Shown: one piece after another, positions 2,331 through 9,248 of the stretch
How the letters are laid out: the number at the start of each line of letters is the position of its first letter
Numbering within the stretch: position 1 is the stretch's first letter
NCBI GenBank assembly: GCA_038496445.1
Contig: JALMLS010000268.1
Coordinates: 248,001-312,000 of the forward strand
Source: Trichosphaerium sp. ATCC 40318
Taxonomy: Eukaryota; Protista; Tubulinea
Direction of reading: 5' to 3'
Length of the DNA stretch: 64,000 nt
Position numbers and translations under genes: made by a program
Notes under the pieces: generated by a model
The model's database searches: none
Seen by the model: only the letters and a program-made list of their open reading frames with translations
Told to the model about the DNA's origin: nothing

Positions 2331-2488
2331 CGTTGGAACTGTTTCCGTTCAAACACAAAAAAAAAAAAACAAGAACGCACCGAAAGTTATTTCGGCGAAA
2401 ATATTTGTAAATTGTTTGACAACTATTGACGCTAAATCACATTATTTTACTGCTCATAATCACACAAAGCAACACAAAACCTAAAACG

Positions 2489-3235
2489 ATGAATACGTCA
2501 AAACAAGATATCTGTCACGTTTTACACCTTCCGTTGGAGCTTCAGCTCGAAATAGTTGATTTGGACTTCTCAGCGTATTTAATCTGGCCAATGTTATCCA
2601 AACAAACAGCGATGACGACAAGGTTTGATACACAGTTAGATAAACACGGTAAATGGCTAAAACAAGGTAAATTAGCTTCAAAGGTTATAAAACAACAGTA
2701 TTGGATACATGGTAAACGTGACGGTGAGTACAAAGAGTGGTATGCCCTCGGAACATTATCAAAGCAATGTCATTATTCCAATGATAAACTAGAAGGAGAT
2801 TACAAGATGTGGTATAGTAACGGAGTGCTATGGAAACATTGTGCTTATGTTAATGATACTCAACAAGGAGATTATAAGCACTGGTATGAAAATGGTCAGC
2901 TGAAAGAGCAGTCTTCTTATAACGCCAATCACAAGCTAGAAGGAGAAAACAAGTGGTGGTATGAAACTGGAATACTTATGTGTCATTGTAATTATATTGA
3001 TGGTAAACTTTCCGGTGAGTATAAGAGATGGTATGAAGATGGACAAATACAAGTCATACGTAATTATTCTAAGGGTAAAATCAGTGGAGATGTAAAGTGG
3101 TGGCATAAAAACGGACAACTTGCTGAGCATTGTGTTTATGTCAACGATAAGTTGGAAGGAGATTACAAGATATGGACATATCACGGACAACTTAAACACT
3201 GTGTACACTATAATAATGGTGAACCAACATATTAA
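2489..3235 (+). CDS. Intronless F-box-like + MORN-variant repeat protein, paralog of 1017-1910
   Basis: VLHLPLELQLEIV, a shared WPxxxKQTAMTxxxDxxLxKHG motif and about 8 repeats of G-E/D-Y-K-x-W-Y-x-N-G. Confidence 0.85.
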   Translation: MNTSKQDICHVLHLPLELQLEIVDLDFSAYLIWPMLSKQTAMTTRFDTQLDKHGKWLKQGKLASKVIKQQYWIHGKRDGEYKEWYALGTLSKQCHYSNDKLEGDYKMWYSNGVLWKHCAYVNDTQQGDYKHWYENGQLKEQSSYNANHKLEGENKWWYETGILMCHCNYIDGKLSGEYKRWYEDGQIQVIRNYSKGKISGDVKWWHKNGQLAEHCVYVNDKLEGDYKIWTYHGQLKHCVHYNNGEPTY

Positions 3236-3365: not shown

Positions 3366-4515
3366 TCAAGAGTGAGTCTTGTCAGTACGGTAGTATTGCT
3401 GAGGTACTTCCATTTCAAGGCTATTAATATCATCAATCTTAACTAATGTTATGCCATCATCAAGTGTCAGAAAGCAAAAAACACTGCCGTTGAACATTGT
3501 TATGCCAGATACATATTCCAAATCATAAAGATTGAATGCTCTAATGTTGTCACTGAACAAATCATGCATTGTTATAAAACAAGGATATGTATGTGTTACA
3601 AGAACCTTAGATGCAACAGATAAATCTTGATCATTTTTATCATGATACAAACACATAAATCCTTCTTCTCCGGCATTGTATGTTTGATATTCCAAGTTTT
3701 TAGTTCCGTTTTCGTTTGACAAAAAGAACATTGGAAAATAAGTTCCATAAATACCTGGCATGCATTGATGTATAACAGAAGGTACGTTATTAAAAAACAA
3801 GTGCTTAGCAACTTGTCCGTAATATCCCTGGTCTGCAAAGTCATCTATCAAAGAAGACCAATATACGCATGTTGGCTTGTCAATCCAACACTTGTATATC
3901 CCTTGCTCTATTTTACCTTCTTTCTTTACAATAGTATAGTAAACACTCGGATCTTTGCTATCACAACACATTAAAACTATACTCTCATTCGAGATAACCT
4001 TGTCTTTGAACTTAATAGAAAAATCTCTGAGTATGCTTCCTGTTTTCAAGTCAACTACTGCAGACCGCGTTTCGCTTCTAACAACCATAAACTTTTCATC
4101 ACACGTGATAGATATTGAATAAATGTCTTGTATTTTTAGAAGAGTCCTTGGTTCCTTTGACGGTTGAGTCAAGTCGAACACTAATATAGTATCCCCTACA
4201 CCAACATACGCCTGAAAAAAAAAAATCAAAAAAAAAAGTACAAAAATAGAAAAGTGACATTGGTTTCAGTGTACAATTTTGCCTTAGAAATTCGTAAAAA
4301 GCGCCGTTGGTCAGTTTTAAAGTGTTTTACACAAAATGGCACTGCCCACAGACTGTTTTCCTTATTTTAGCGCTTAGCGACTTTAGGTATAAAGAATATG
4401 CGTCTGCGGAATGGTTTAAATAGCTGGAACGTACAAGGCCTGCCTTTGTGACTGAAATCTTACATTCAGTCTGTTCGTACATTCCTGGTACCTTGTAAGT
4501 CCAGTTGGGTATCAT
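3366..4515 (-). CDS. Hypothetical beta-rich (propeller-like) protein; 5' exons uncertain
   Basis: Long terminal exon 3366-4212 after a poly-T/CAG acceptor; no family recognised. Confidence 0.55.
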
Positions 4516-5083
4516 TGATGACGCTTTCACTGCACTCTGTCGATATAGTTAGTATAAATAGATAGAAACGTTACAATCGACAATTAAACTAGATTAATGG
4601 GTTGCAATAGTAATGAAAAGCTCTTGATAGCGTTTTAGGTTTCTAAGCATTCTTTGAGGTTCAAGCCGTACCATTTTAATGTTATTAGGTTGACGCTACT
4701 ATAGGTGTACGTTTGACACAATTGAGACGTTAATAGGCTTTGAATTGGTGTGATTCACAGAACACATTTATTAGCAATTGAAATCCTCACGACACAACTT
4801 ATCGTAAAAAGTAACAATGTTGGATTGTTGTTCCCAACGTTCTATTGCGGAGTTATACGCGGTCAATGACAACACCAAGACGTTTACTTTTAAGAAGGCC
4901 TCAAAAAAAAAGGTTAAGTTGTCTTCTATCAGTGTAACAAATTGAAGCACAATTTTCACTTGTTAACAACACTCTGCTTCCTTATTTAGAAGTGTAATTT
5001 GACAATGGTAACATACGCTATACGAACAAGTATTCATGCATTATGGGTACAAAGGTTTAAATGCAACAGAGTTGTTTTATTAA

Positions 5084-5161
5084 TTGTTTTTCTCTCATTT
5101 ATCAAAGTGTTTCATTCGTCAGGTTGTACGTTTGTGATACACTCCTCATTACAAAAAACAA
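5084..5161 (-). promoter_or_regulatory. Eukaryotic type II SECIS element in the 3' UTR
   Basis: Minus strand reads A-UGAG-GAGUGUAUCA-C-AAA-CGU-acaaccug-ACG-aa-UGAAACACUU-UGAU: UGAN/NGAN quartet, 10-bp helix II, unpaired AAA, mini-stem, and helix I UUGUUUU/AAAACAA; about 40 nt after the stop of a gene with an in-frame TGA. Confidence 0.85.
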
Positions 5162-5189
5162 TAAAGAAACTCAGTTAACAAAAATATCT

Positions 5190-6780
5190 TTAAACAGAGC
5201 CAAGATTGCCAAAACCGCTGGTTTGGAGTTGACGTTGAAACGTCATTAACTCATTAACTTTTAATCTGGTCTCGATCATTCTCTGACGAGTCAACTGCTG
5301 CAATGCAGCCATACCGCCTCTAATATCGCCGTTTCTGGTTTAAAGTTAAACTAGAACAAAACAAAAAAATATTTTATGTCACGTGCCTGAAGCGTTGTCT
5401 AATTTGTTGTGTTTGATAGAAATTCTTGAGACTTTTTTGAAGAAAATTTAAAAAAGAAGTCACACCAAAAAACCCATTTTGCATCTCATCCTTTACAGGT
5501 GATGAATGGCCTAAAGATATCTTCCCTTGGTCATCAAACGCACCACAACTAGCAAACCCGAAAGCAAATCTCCAGTTCCTCTTATAAACCATTTCAAGCA
5601 TTTTCATAGCAGGAATCTCAGAAGGAAAACCTTGACGAGTTACATTCACAGCAACAGGTACAAAATACGCATTGATGTAATTTATGACTGATTCGTTCGA
5701 AAGTACAGTCGAACGCATCTAAAACAATCAATATTTTTGAAATAGTATAAATGATAACGCACCAGTCTCCCACCCAGTCAGCAAACATTGCTATTTTGAT
5801 CAGCTAATCTTCCAACAACAATCTCAACAAAAATAGGTTTTTGCAAACGTTGAGCTAACGCTACGGCCTTGGAAAAGAAACATGCGTCAGTATGCAAATA
5901 GGCTACTAATACTACCGCAAGTATATAAATACCTGAGCTGGAGATTGAGCCCATTTAATCAAGTTCCATCTTTGTAATGGCTCGTTTTTAAGAGCAATAA
6001 GAAGCCTCTTCTTGCGACTTTCTGGTAGTTGTTCTGGATTCTTTCCAGCCTCAGTCAAGTGATTGGCCTAAAAACAAAATATTGTCTTTAGTACACGTGA
6101 TGCGAACAATTAAAAGAGAACTTACCACACCTTGCATGAACATACCAGCAATAGCATTAGCAAACGGGTTAGGTTCACTAGCAGCGTTTGCTTGGTTTGT
6201 TTGACCTCTCCTATTGTTCTGAGAAACTGCTCCAGCTTGATTTCGAATACCGTGACCGAGCTGTACTTTAGGTAGAAGTGCTACAATCGAAAAGTCATTC
6301 AACAATAGAAAAATGCGTTATGTGAATCCACGTGTGGTGGTCATACCTGCTTCAGTTGCCAAGTCTATCCATTGTGCAGCATTTTGAGGTACTCCTAAAT
6401 GGTTATCGGTTTGTCCTGGTACATTTGAGGCTTCAACAAATGTTAACGCTTAAAACCAGATCAAAGAACCACTCACCTTTGTTTGCGTTGTTGATAAGCG
6501 TATTCGCTCGAAATTGCTGTTCGTTGACAGCTTGCGCGTGGTTTTGAGGTGCTGTAAATCCTCTGGTTACAGTATCAGCAATGGCGGTAGCTACCACAGT
6601 GCGTACCCGTCTGTGAAGTTATTTGTCCATAAATTTGCAATCCCACCGAGTAAATTACCTTAGAAAAGGTAAGAAAAGCTTACGTGATGAATAGTATATA
6701 CCTAGAGACTCGTTTGACGGTTGTTGTGTGTTCGGGGATCTTGGAGGCCTGTTTGGAACTGGTGGAGGTCTACCTCTCAT
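5190..6780 (-). CDS. Selenoprotein with SelN-like/thioredoxin-fold C-terminal domain (Sec = TGA 5778-5780)
   Basis: Nine exons join in frame to ...IKWAQSPAQAVALAQRLQKPIFVEIVVGRLADQNSNVC-U-LGGRLMRSTVLSNESVINYINAYFVPV..., comparable to SELENON DDQSCUGSGRTLRETVL; downstream SECIS. Confidence 0.8.
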
Positions 6781-7063
6781 TTTATGCGTGAACCTTATGT
6801 GCTCTACACGCAACTTTAGCGGACCTGCCCAGAAATGCCGAAAAGTTGTCAAAAAGGTTGTGACAAAAAGGTCAACGATTTTATTTTGGGCTCAATTTCG
6901 GCGTCTTCTTTGCAAACTTCAATGATGCGCAGTGCGACCGATATACCACCACATTCCTCAATGAGGTATGCTGTTACGGTAGAAGGCATGGTAAGACAGT
7001 TTGGTCGTGCGACAGCAATGGCAAATATAATAAACAGTTTTTTTTTGCTTTATTTCATCGTTG

Positions 7064-9248
7064 CTATTGTACAAAGTCCATATCATCTTGCTGATCATCA
7101 GGTTGATTTATGTCAACATGTAATTGTTCGTCTATAGAATCAGACGGAAGAGAAAATCCTGTTGACTCCATCAAGGTGTCACCATCTTCAGGACCATTCT
7201 GTAAATGAACATCGCCACCCTTCAACAAATCAGTTAATAGTTTCGTTTAAAATCATAAAAATCAGCATTTGTTAACCGCCTTTAAACCACAACATTATAG
7301 GTAATCACCAAATGTAGGTGGTGATTTACAAGTGGATGATTAAGGCCAAAAAAAAGGAAAAGAAAAAATATGGATTTGTTTTGTTGTTTCTTACATGATG
7401 TTGCTCCGAAGATAAATACAATTGTTCCTTCTGTTTTGAAGCATCTAGTGGCAATGCATACCCAGCTGGTACCATTGGTAAACTTATTTGTTGTGGCATT
7501 GCAAAAGGTCCGCCAATATTGGGTATACTCAGTGGAGCCTACAAAAAACGATTAAGAAAAAAATAAGATTAACAAAACAAGTTTCAACTCATAACGGCCT
7601 CACAACCCAACATAATTTGATATGACTCAAAATTCAACTAGGGTATCGCAAACAGATACTTATTCGCCTTACAATAGATAATTTGGTGTCAAACGAGATA
7701 ATAAGAGAACTCGTGTTTGAGCGAAAAAAAAAATACAGTTTGAAGATTTTTTGACGTACTTGTCCCATTGCAAGGCCATATTGCTGACCTACATGCAACT
7801 GTGCTTGATTATAAGCTTGTAATTGTTGTTGTAGTCTCTGAACATCTTGTTCATTTTGTCCAGCTGTCATAGCAGGTTGTAATTGCTGTATGAGCTGAAA
7901 ATTGGATCTGGTATACTGTTCAATTTGTTGACTGGCCTGGAGCTATTCAAAAAAATATTTCCGTTAGTACAATAACGTAATAAGCCGTATCCGTACAATT
8001 GCCATTCTTTCAGCCATAGAAGGTTGTTTTTGTTGGTGATGACCCTAAAAATAAAAGTTAGCAAAATAAAAATCAATTCTTGACTAACCATCGGCGCTGC
8101 AGGAACATTATCCAACGCTACACCGTCAGAACTCGATCTACCATAATATTGGGGTGTTTGCGGTTCCGGTTGGGTTTCTGTGTTATGTACAAATTGCGCT
8201 GGCTATGAGTACATTTCCGTTAAAAATATGACATGAAAAAAAAAAAGGGAGAAAAGTGTGAACTCCATCTCAAGCGGAATAAGGCTATTACCTGCTGCTG
8301 ATAGAACTGTGAATTATACGTCCTCATCTTTGGTGCTGAAGGAACAATATCAATCAAAAAATCAAACGTCCTTGTGTTAGAAACAGCGGAAGCAATATCA
8401 TCCTTTGTAAGTGTTTTACGCTTATTCCTAAGAGTATTCTCCCAAGCCCTTACAGCCACTTCTCTTATAAATAAACAACAAGCCATACCAAATAAATCAC
8501 CAATCTCTCCACCAATCATCTATTTTATCAGAAGAGACACGAGTCAGTACACAACATTTCCATTAAAACAATTATTGAAATTACAATAATTTTCAAAAAA
8601 AAAAGAAAAGAAAAAAAAAGAGAAAGACATACATTTACATCTTCATCTAGAAGCATTATCTTTCTTATACGTGCAACAGGCATAGGTGATTTCCTCTTTT
8701 TCTGTTTAAAATCAATTGACTCTATTTGATCTTGCATCTCCTTCCAGAATGTCTTTGATGGGTCACGTAATGAGTACAAAGGAGGTGGTATATGCTCGAA
8801 ATTATTCAAAAGAGTTTCCTGCACGTGAGATGTTTGTTGAGGTAGTTGAGGCCTTGCAAACGCTTGCAAGTTTCCATACGCCGCCGCATGCGCTGCTTGT
8901 AATTGAGAAGCCAATTGTTGAGGTTGAGGCGGGAGATACGTATTTACGTTGGCATAAGGCAATGAAATAGGCAGCGCTTGCCCAGGTACCGTCAAAGCGG
9001 CTATGTGATCTTGTAACTGAGAATTTGATAAGGCGGTTGGCTGATTTTGCGGAATTTCATCATTTGGCGCTATATACCCGCCAACAGCGCTTGGTTGTAC
9101 GCGTATCGAACCCTGGCTTCTTGTATTGTAGGGTGGAGAATGTAAGGAGGATAATGAGCTGTTTGTTAAATGCTCATCGTCTCCTTTATCACTTTAGCGT
9201 TTTGTGTCACCAATTATGTTGAATTATATACGTACCGTCTAATTCCAT
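7064..9248 (-). CDS. NFYC: NF-YC/HAP5-like histone-fold CCAAT-binding subunit with Q/P-rich flanks
   Basis: MPVARIRKIMLLDEDVN-MIGGE...FIREVAVRAWENTLRNKRKTLTKDDIASAVSNTRTFDFLIDIVP is the NF-YC core; multi-exon. Confidence 0.85.

Follow-up and report, generated by a model that had tools for sequence, protein, structure and literature searches.

A nine-exon gene of Trichosphaerium with an in-frame UGA very likely encodes a thioredoxin-like selenoprotein of an uncurated family

Does an in-frame UGA in the middle of a gene end a short protein, or is it read as selenocysteine (Sec)? The question is raised by a minus-strand gene in a 64,000-nt stretch of DNA from the marine protist Trichosphaerium sp. 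ATCC 40318 (contig JALMLS010000268.1), called the window here; coordinates given without a further identifier are positions within it. The initial annotation, made from the letters alone, had proposed that the gene hides a selenoprotein resembling selenoprotein N (SelN). The locus is a genuine, expressed nine-exon gene. It appears very likely (we put the probability at about 0.9) that it is an intact, transcribed gene for a 390-residue selenoprotein with a thioredoxin-like domain, that its UGA is recoded with the help of a selenocysteine insertion sequence (SECIS) and tRNA-Sec, and that the protein belongs to an uncurated family. The recoding itself is wholly standard.

The reading frame runs from an ATG at 6780-6778 to a TAA at 5192-5190 on the minus strand and comprises 390 codons, with TGA as codon 227. 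In the genome, an in-frame stop precedes this ATG by 37 codons and no Met intervenes, so that the ATG supplies the first possible start. The sequence TGC-TGA at 5783-5778 provides Cys226 (TGC, 5783-5781) and the presumptive Sec227 (TGA, 5780-5778), placed, as the initial annotation had it, amid a thioredoxin-like fold, which is deduced from the model of a bacterial homologue (see below). Past the UGA, another 163 residues are encoded without interruption, over two further exons and up to the TAA, in line with the roughly 160 residues originally estimated.

The exon structure is given by a public transcript contig of 1376 nt (L017, Joint Genome Institute (JGI) sample 3300016894), the product of which is also listed under MMETSP. 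In a spliced alignment to the window, the transcript follows nine exons with 5 internal mismatches in 1374 positions, which amount to one amino-acid difference. The TGA is kept in frame in the spliced transcript, which reaches across the SECIS as well. Because the transcript matches the nine exons and keeps the in-frame TGA, the UGA is retained in the mature mRNA, the point on which the initial annotation had looked to RNA for a check. The splice sites of all eight introns are valid; seven introns are GT-AG and 43-66 nt long, and canonical splice sites connect the frames upstream and downstream of the Sec exon. The features of the gene are as follows.

6702..6855, minus strand: exon 1, with at least 75 nt of 5' untranslated region (UTR) followed by the ATG; Pro/Arg/Asn-rich N-terminus; matched by the transcript.
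6607..6658, minus strand: exon 2, from the spliced alignment of the transcript; flanked by GT-AG introns of 43 and 44 nt.
6477..6562, minus strand: exon 3, from the transcript alignment.
6347..6430, minus strand: exon 4, with the N-terminal motif H-L-G-V-P-Q-N ..., conserved in eukaryotic orthologues.
6126..6280, minus strand: exon 5, of low complexity and N/Q/A-rich, from the transcript alignment.
5933..6067, minus strand: exon 6, with a W-x-x-I-x-W motif; the thioredoxin-like domain begins here.
5763..5867, minus strand: exon 7, the Sec exon, of 105 nt (35 codons, phase 0), with a K-P-I-F-V strand, Cys226-Sec227 and L-G-G-R-L.
5778..5780, minus strand: the UGA codon read as Sec227, present in the spliced transcript, with protein conservation in one frame on both sides.
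5387..5718, minus strand: exon 8, the remainder of the thioredoxin-like domain.
5335..5386, minus strand: the final intron (GC-AG, 52 nt), which the transcript confirms.
5062..5334, minus strand: exon 9, with a C-terminal helical tail, the TAA at 5192-5190 and some 128 nt of 3'UTR.

The initial annotation had drawn the Sec exon at 5763-5868. Its end at 5763 stands, while its start has to be moved by one position since the acceptor AG occupies 5869-5868 and the exon begins at 5867. An end of the reading frame at the TAA at 5376-5374 was considered and dropped, the transcript and the orthologues showing a GC-AG intron and one more exon. Indeed, the GC-AG junction at 5386-5335 alone reproduces both the transcript and a public 158-aa product (P0001), and the tail encoded by exon 9 is conserved in the orthologues P0002 and P0005. 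As predicted for standard gene callers, the public open reading frame (ORF) calls on the transcript consist of two pieces, of 251 and 158 aa, divided at the UGA.

A recoded UGA calls for a SECIS in the 3'UTR, and a candidate is found there:

5092..5160, minus strand: SECIS-like element, type II, with the core AUGA at 5149-5146 and a 3' UGAU with GA at 5103-5102.

The ATGA core starts 40 nt past the stop codon, close to where the element had been placed by the initial annotation, and 535 nt past the UGA in the mRNA. In the structural model, the ATGA paired with the GA at 5103-5102 closes a helix II of ten positions. An unpaired AAA lies 12 nt after the AUGA and is followed by a mini-stem of three pairs (CGU/ACG) with an eight-base loop; beneath the core, helix I is U-rich on one side and A-rich on the other. 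The modelled layout is that of a type II element, as had been claimed. A pairing of the ATGA with the nearer GA at 5120-5119 was tried and discarded; the GA at 5103-5102 gives a proper helix II and mini-stem. When both strands of the window (128 kb) are passed through a loose structural filter, 30 cores are retained, of which two, including this one, have comparable energies. Hairpins built alike are located 20-35 nt after the stop in the orthologous mRNAs L013, L015/L016 and L026, and also downstream of two paralogues from the same genome, L020 and L021 (see below). In an RNAalifold consensus of six family members, the ATGA and the 3' TGA are invariant and 9 of the 12 predicted pairs show compensatory changes; L020 and L021 are near-duplicates, so that the independent elements number five rather than six. 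The weight of the element comes from this context, namely the small number of comparable candidates, the shared architecture and the compensatory changes, and not from a covariance score.

The decoding machinery was sought in the genome assembly (70 Mb, 642 contigs). Infernal detects a tRNA-Sec (anticodon UCA) with 61.7 bits, the cut-off being 47; ARAGORN missed it. SepSecS is present as a multi-exon gene, and exons of SelD are found as well, one of the matches having a TGA inside it.

The conservation of the protein on both sides of the UGA provides a further line of evidence. Exon 8 (residues 233-346, that is, 114 residues after the motif) was used as a phmmer query in an exhaustive search of 1.84 billion representative sequences. 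It yields 63 matches, 26 of them at E <= 1e-10; one (P0034) is an unrelated repeat protein. Among the 62 family matches, 46 begin at the equivalent of Met233, six codons past the UGA, a pattern which arises from ORF callers restarting after a stop. Residues L238, S239, I244, N257, T259, F263, P264, F287 and G297 are near-invariant in the exon 8 alignment (A1). At the nucleotide level, the orthologous contigs L013, L015, L016 and L026 carry TGC-TGA followed by L-x-G-R, with conservation on both sides in the same frame. Contigs L013, L015/L016 and L026 are intron-less and mRNA-like, one with a poly(A) tail, and the L013 protein is 51% identical to that of the window. Another contig, L025, begins at the TGA. 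A word-index protein search with P0001 returned the self-match only. As a separate observation, the orthologous contig L014 (506-672) loses the frame just before the thioredoxin-like domain relative to L015/L016, which looks like a retained intron or an indel in the metatranscriptome assembly.

The family extends to bacteria, where three contigs read C-TGA-L-G-G-R exactly as the window protein does:

L022:1839-2573, L023:1246-1980 and L024:2-607: bacterial family members with TGC-TGA, a signal peptide at the N-terminus and, past the UGA, a stretch prone to form hairpins.

L022 and L023 come from groundwater, and the bacterial contigs carry bacterial neighbour genes. Conserved in-frame coding thus continues past the UGA in L013, L015, L026 and the bacterial contigs, rather than ending there. 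In three uninterrupted homologues (P0054, P0055 and P0063), the alignment runs straight through the Sec site. The piece preceding the Sec codon (L017:532-753) matches the N-terminal half of the full-length bacterial protein P0054 (pairwise E = 3e-4), and exon 8 matches its C-terminal half.

The same homologues give access to the fold. P0055 passes the Pfam model Thioredox_DsbH (PF03190) at 31.9 bits against a cut-off of 27. The family profile A1 aligns with PDB entry 3ira, a DUF255 protein, at E = 0.011, and places the family Cys over the first Cys of CHWC. P0054 as modelled by AlphaFold, with a predicted local distance difference test score (pLDDT) of 91, is thioredoxin-like and has Cys85 directly before helix 86-93. 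Foldseek searches with this model give 3f9u, 3ira and 7tkv as top hits (E = 7e-5 to 9e-4); further neighbours are ERp19, AGR2/3, DsbH and, lower down, a UAS domain. When P0045 alone is used to look for related loci, only ordinary CxxC DUF255 genes are returned. Searches with pieces of the window protein found no matching NCBIfam model, and phmmer found no match between the C-terminal exon and PDB sequences. Judged by these homologues, the fold of the window protein is thioredoxin-like, closest to Thioredoxin_7 and DUF255 (Thioredox_DsbH). C226-U227 falls at the start of helix 1 in the modelled fold of the bacterial homologue, and Pro264 of a near-invariant G-F-P would occupy the place of the thioredoxin cis-Pro loop.

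The first ~180 residues of the window protein are N/A/P/Q-rich and of low complexity, with short motifs common to the eukaryotic orthologues. They contain neither a hydrophobic segment nor a signal peptide. Over the whole protein, the highest 19-residue Kyte-Doolittle mean is 1.09 and lies within a strand of the thioredoxin domain; hydropathy and a Pfam search of the N-terminal 251 aa reveal no transmembrane (TM) segment and no EF-hand. The initial annotation was thus right about the missing TM and EF-hand regions and about the unusual N-terminus. Because it lacks a signal peptide or membrane segment, the protist protein is probably soluble and, judging by its sequence, not secreted; the bacterial members, for their part, do carry a signal peptide. 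The proposal of a distinct soluble protist family consequently holds as to probable solubility, and not as to restriction to protists, given the bacterial members.

How the protein would work can be sketched from the fold and the motif. A tRNA-Sec directed by the type II SECIS of the 3'UTR would decode the UGA at 5780-5778 as Sec227. This residue and its neighbour Cys226 would be situated where the first helix begins, a position occupied in a CxxC site by the first Cys. Selenolate/thiol and vicinal selenenylsulfide would be the two states of the pair, which most likely acts as a thiol-disulfide oxidoreductase.

Several results weigh against the selenoprotein reading. Rfam SECIS_1 aligns the 3'UTR element in the same register, but with 18 bits where the gathering score is 35 (E = 8.2 in a scan of the short transcript), and no SECIS is reported at E <= 10 when Rfam is run on the 4 kb that surround the gene. 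Folded without constraint, the 3'UTR adopts a different structure with a stability z-score of +0.56 relative to shuffles, which is not significant. Because of the 18-bit score and the non-significant free fold, 'textbook', the word chosen by the initial annotation for this element, is too strong. Among the machinery components named there, tRNA-Sec and SelD (and also SepSecS) are accounted for; eEFSec, SBP2 and PSTK were not identified in the genome, a search with TIGR03575 remaining blank and the matches to TIGR00475 being generic GTPases. A hunt for Sec and Cys homologues likewise succeeded in part. Homologues with the Sec site exist, but the three uninterrupted ones, P0054, P0055 and P0063, read C-D, C-E or C-L at the site and are one residue shorter; since these have no Cys at the Sec position and the other matches are split there, the usual Sec/Cys pairing is not seen. 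Finally, Pfam recognizes no family in the window pieces (five exon pieces and the N-terminal 251 aa) and the window exon fails to align with a DUF255 protein when the two are compared pairwise. The fold assignment rests on the bacterial intermediates, as the window exons match no Pfam family.

What else could the locus be? If the UGA were an ordinary stop, the gene would make a 226-residue protein and the downstream frame would be a separate or untranslated ORF, which is how the public calls on the transcript treat it and which the sub-threshold SECIS score would suit. Such a stop would interrupt one fold domain after strand 1 and before helix 1. Moreover, protists and bacteria alike conserve the downstream protein sequence, which is without exception in phase with the TGA; the TGA lies 5 to 6 codons before the next Met, and SECIS hairpins co-occur in six members. 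We regard a genuine stop as highly improbable. About equally improbable is a reading of the UGA as Cys or Trp without selenium, by a variant code or near-cognate read-through. Nothing specific speaks for it, and it is countered by the dedicated tRNA-Sec, SepSecS and SelD, by the occurrence of a single TGA among 390 codons at the family-conserved site, and by the orthologue L013, which uses TGA both at the Sec site and as a real stop.

A decaying pseudogene or an assembly artefact has a precedent close by. The same contig carries, at a distance of 79 kb, a paralogue (L019, G000:C27:172963-176241) with exon identities of 87-98%; because of its in-frame TAA stops and frame changes, this copy is read as a recently disabled duplicate or a mis-assembly. 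In the window copy, the conserved TGA is the only would-be defect, each intron retains usable splice sites, and the independent transcript departs from it so little that a single residue is changed. The window copy is the intact, expressed one, and we consider decay or artefact to be the least probable of these three alternatives. The reading as an intact gene for a selenoprotein remains by far the best account.

If the protein is a selenoprotein, is it SelN? Membership would mean a distant orthologue, one in which the catalytic domain of SelN stands alone, devoid of membrane anchor and calcium sensor. The adjacent Cys-Sec pair in a thioredoxin-like domain is indeed the active site described for SelN (PMC8148124, PMC12839072). 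Both proteins have an Arg four residues after Sec: human Sec462 and the disease residue Arg466 lie in the thioredoxin-like domain (PMC8967691, PMC12839072), and the window protein has U227 and R231. A few algae are reported to have SELENON, nearly always as the Sec form (PMC7539508). Further likenesses are a SECIS in the 3'UTR and about 130-160 residues after Sec. On the other side, the SelN motif is S-C-U-G (PMC12839072, PMC8967691), whereas the window protein reads V-C-U-L-G and all of its homologues read C-U-L. Compared by published descriptions, SelN is a type II endoplasmic reticulum (ER) membrane glycoprotein of ~556-590 aa with an EF-hand and, in human, a type I SECIS (PMC3753652); the window protein has 390 aa, an N/Q/P-rich N-terminus and a type II SECIS, and lacks TM and EF-hand.

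No animal-sized SelN occurs among the 63 phmmer matches obtained with the 114 residues after the motif, a query for which remote kinship would be invisible at that database size. The relatives that can be detected are DUF255 and Thioredoxin_7 proteins. The literature search found no paper linking SelN to bacteria or amoebae, and full-text searches for SelN peptide strings had no match. The initial annotation took the C-U pair followed by xGRxxRxTVL to be characteristic of SelN; the sequence after Sec in SelN may indeed also read x-x-G-R-x-x-R-x-T-V-L, which makes the extended motif a lead rather than a test. Of the original SelN-like label, the hidden selenoprotein with its C-U pair and the Arg at U+4 survives; the S-C-U-G motif, the anchor and the EF-hand are absent, and membership of the SelN family is not established. 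Membership is plausible, although we rate it at clearly less than even odds, and the window gene is not filed as SelN.

Other thioredoxin-fold and Cys-Sec proteins offer closer or more distant parallels. DUF255 (PF03190; YyaL, SPATA20) and Thioredoxin_7 (PF13899) share the thioredoxin-like subfold; the family Cys falls on the first Cys of the CHWC site of DUF255, and the helix after the Cys aligns too (S-D-x-x-V-I ... F-V/I-P-V). DUF255 proteins have CxxC and no Sec, in contrast to the C-U of the present family, in which the distance from the Cys to the S-D motif is greater by one residue. Like the G-C-U-G of thioredoxin reductase, the pair in the window protein comprises a vicinal Cys and Sec able to form an eight-membered selenenylsulfide ring. 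However, the pair of thioredoxin reductase is carried on the flexible C-terminal tail of a flavoenzyme, while that of the window protein takes the place of CxxC within a thioredoxin fold. ERp18/ERp19 (TXNDC12) and AGR2/AGR3 are among the solved structures nearest to the P0054 model, but they are ER proteins with CxxC or CxxS, without Sec and with 11-16% identity. The bacterial Trx7/PDZ (NF041199) and VPGUxxT (NF041383) proteins are likewise thioredoxin-fold Sec proteins; their motifs differ (CxxU and VPGU), and the bacterial members of the present family score 16.6 bits against the NF041199 cut-off of 275 and 10.9 against the NF041383 cut-off of 300.

The family is unnamed and occurs across diverse protists and bacteria; gene callers nearly always cut its members in two at the Sec codon. 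It has no Pfam or NCBIfam model, and the bacterial branch matched none of the NCBIfam models checked. Ten cluster representatives that were looked up come from metagenome or metatranscriptome sources only and bear no informative name. The inspected part of the table in a 2026 inventory of prokaryotic selenoproteins has no matching entry, nor did term searches of its whole text give one (PMC13188914). The bacterial C-TGA-L-G-G-R members may thus constitute an uncatalogued bacterial selenoprotein family. A more far-reaching proposal starts from an uncatalogued C-U-L-G-G-R family that is nearly always in Sec form and is shared by many protists with bacteria of Planctomycetota, Verrucomicrobiota and Poribacteria-like lineages. 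In this view the family would be a free-standing forerunner or a sister of the SelN catalytic domain, to which animals later joined a membrane anchor and an EF-hand. This is unlikely on present evidence, a shade more so than SelN membership itself.

The two further paralogues mentioned above, L020 (G000:C342:920-4210) and L021 (G000:C386:4310-7600), show ~40% identity with the window protein and hardly differ from one another. A separate SECIS-like hairpin (AUGA...AA...GA) accompanies each of them, and the two may be alleles or the result of a recent duplication. Around the selenoprotein gene, the window contains the following features.

8220-8995, minus strand: ORFs like a histone-fold (NF-YC/Dr1-like) gene with an intron between them, unrelated to the selenoprotein gene.
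2426-3235, plus strand: a MORN-repeat-like ORF, also unrelated to it.
4510-4564, plus strand: a weak match to a C/D-box small nucleolar RNA (Rfam sn3071, 17 bits, E = 8.3), probably due to chance.

What does the finding mean? The recoding mechanism and the fold class are ordinary, while the family itself is uncatalogued. SelN is a human muscle-disease protein. To our knowledge, no structure of its catalytic domain has been solved, the domain's substrate chemistry is not known, and no origin outside animals has gained acceptance. If the kinship with SelN were true, a small, soluble Cys-Sec protein of thioredoxin fold, present in bacteria as well, would be a tractable model for SelN chemistry. 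Even without this kinship, the gene points to a widespread Sec-dependent family outside Pfam, NCBIfam and the inspected portion of the 2026 prokaryotic inventory, one which public ORF calls split systematically at the Sec codon.

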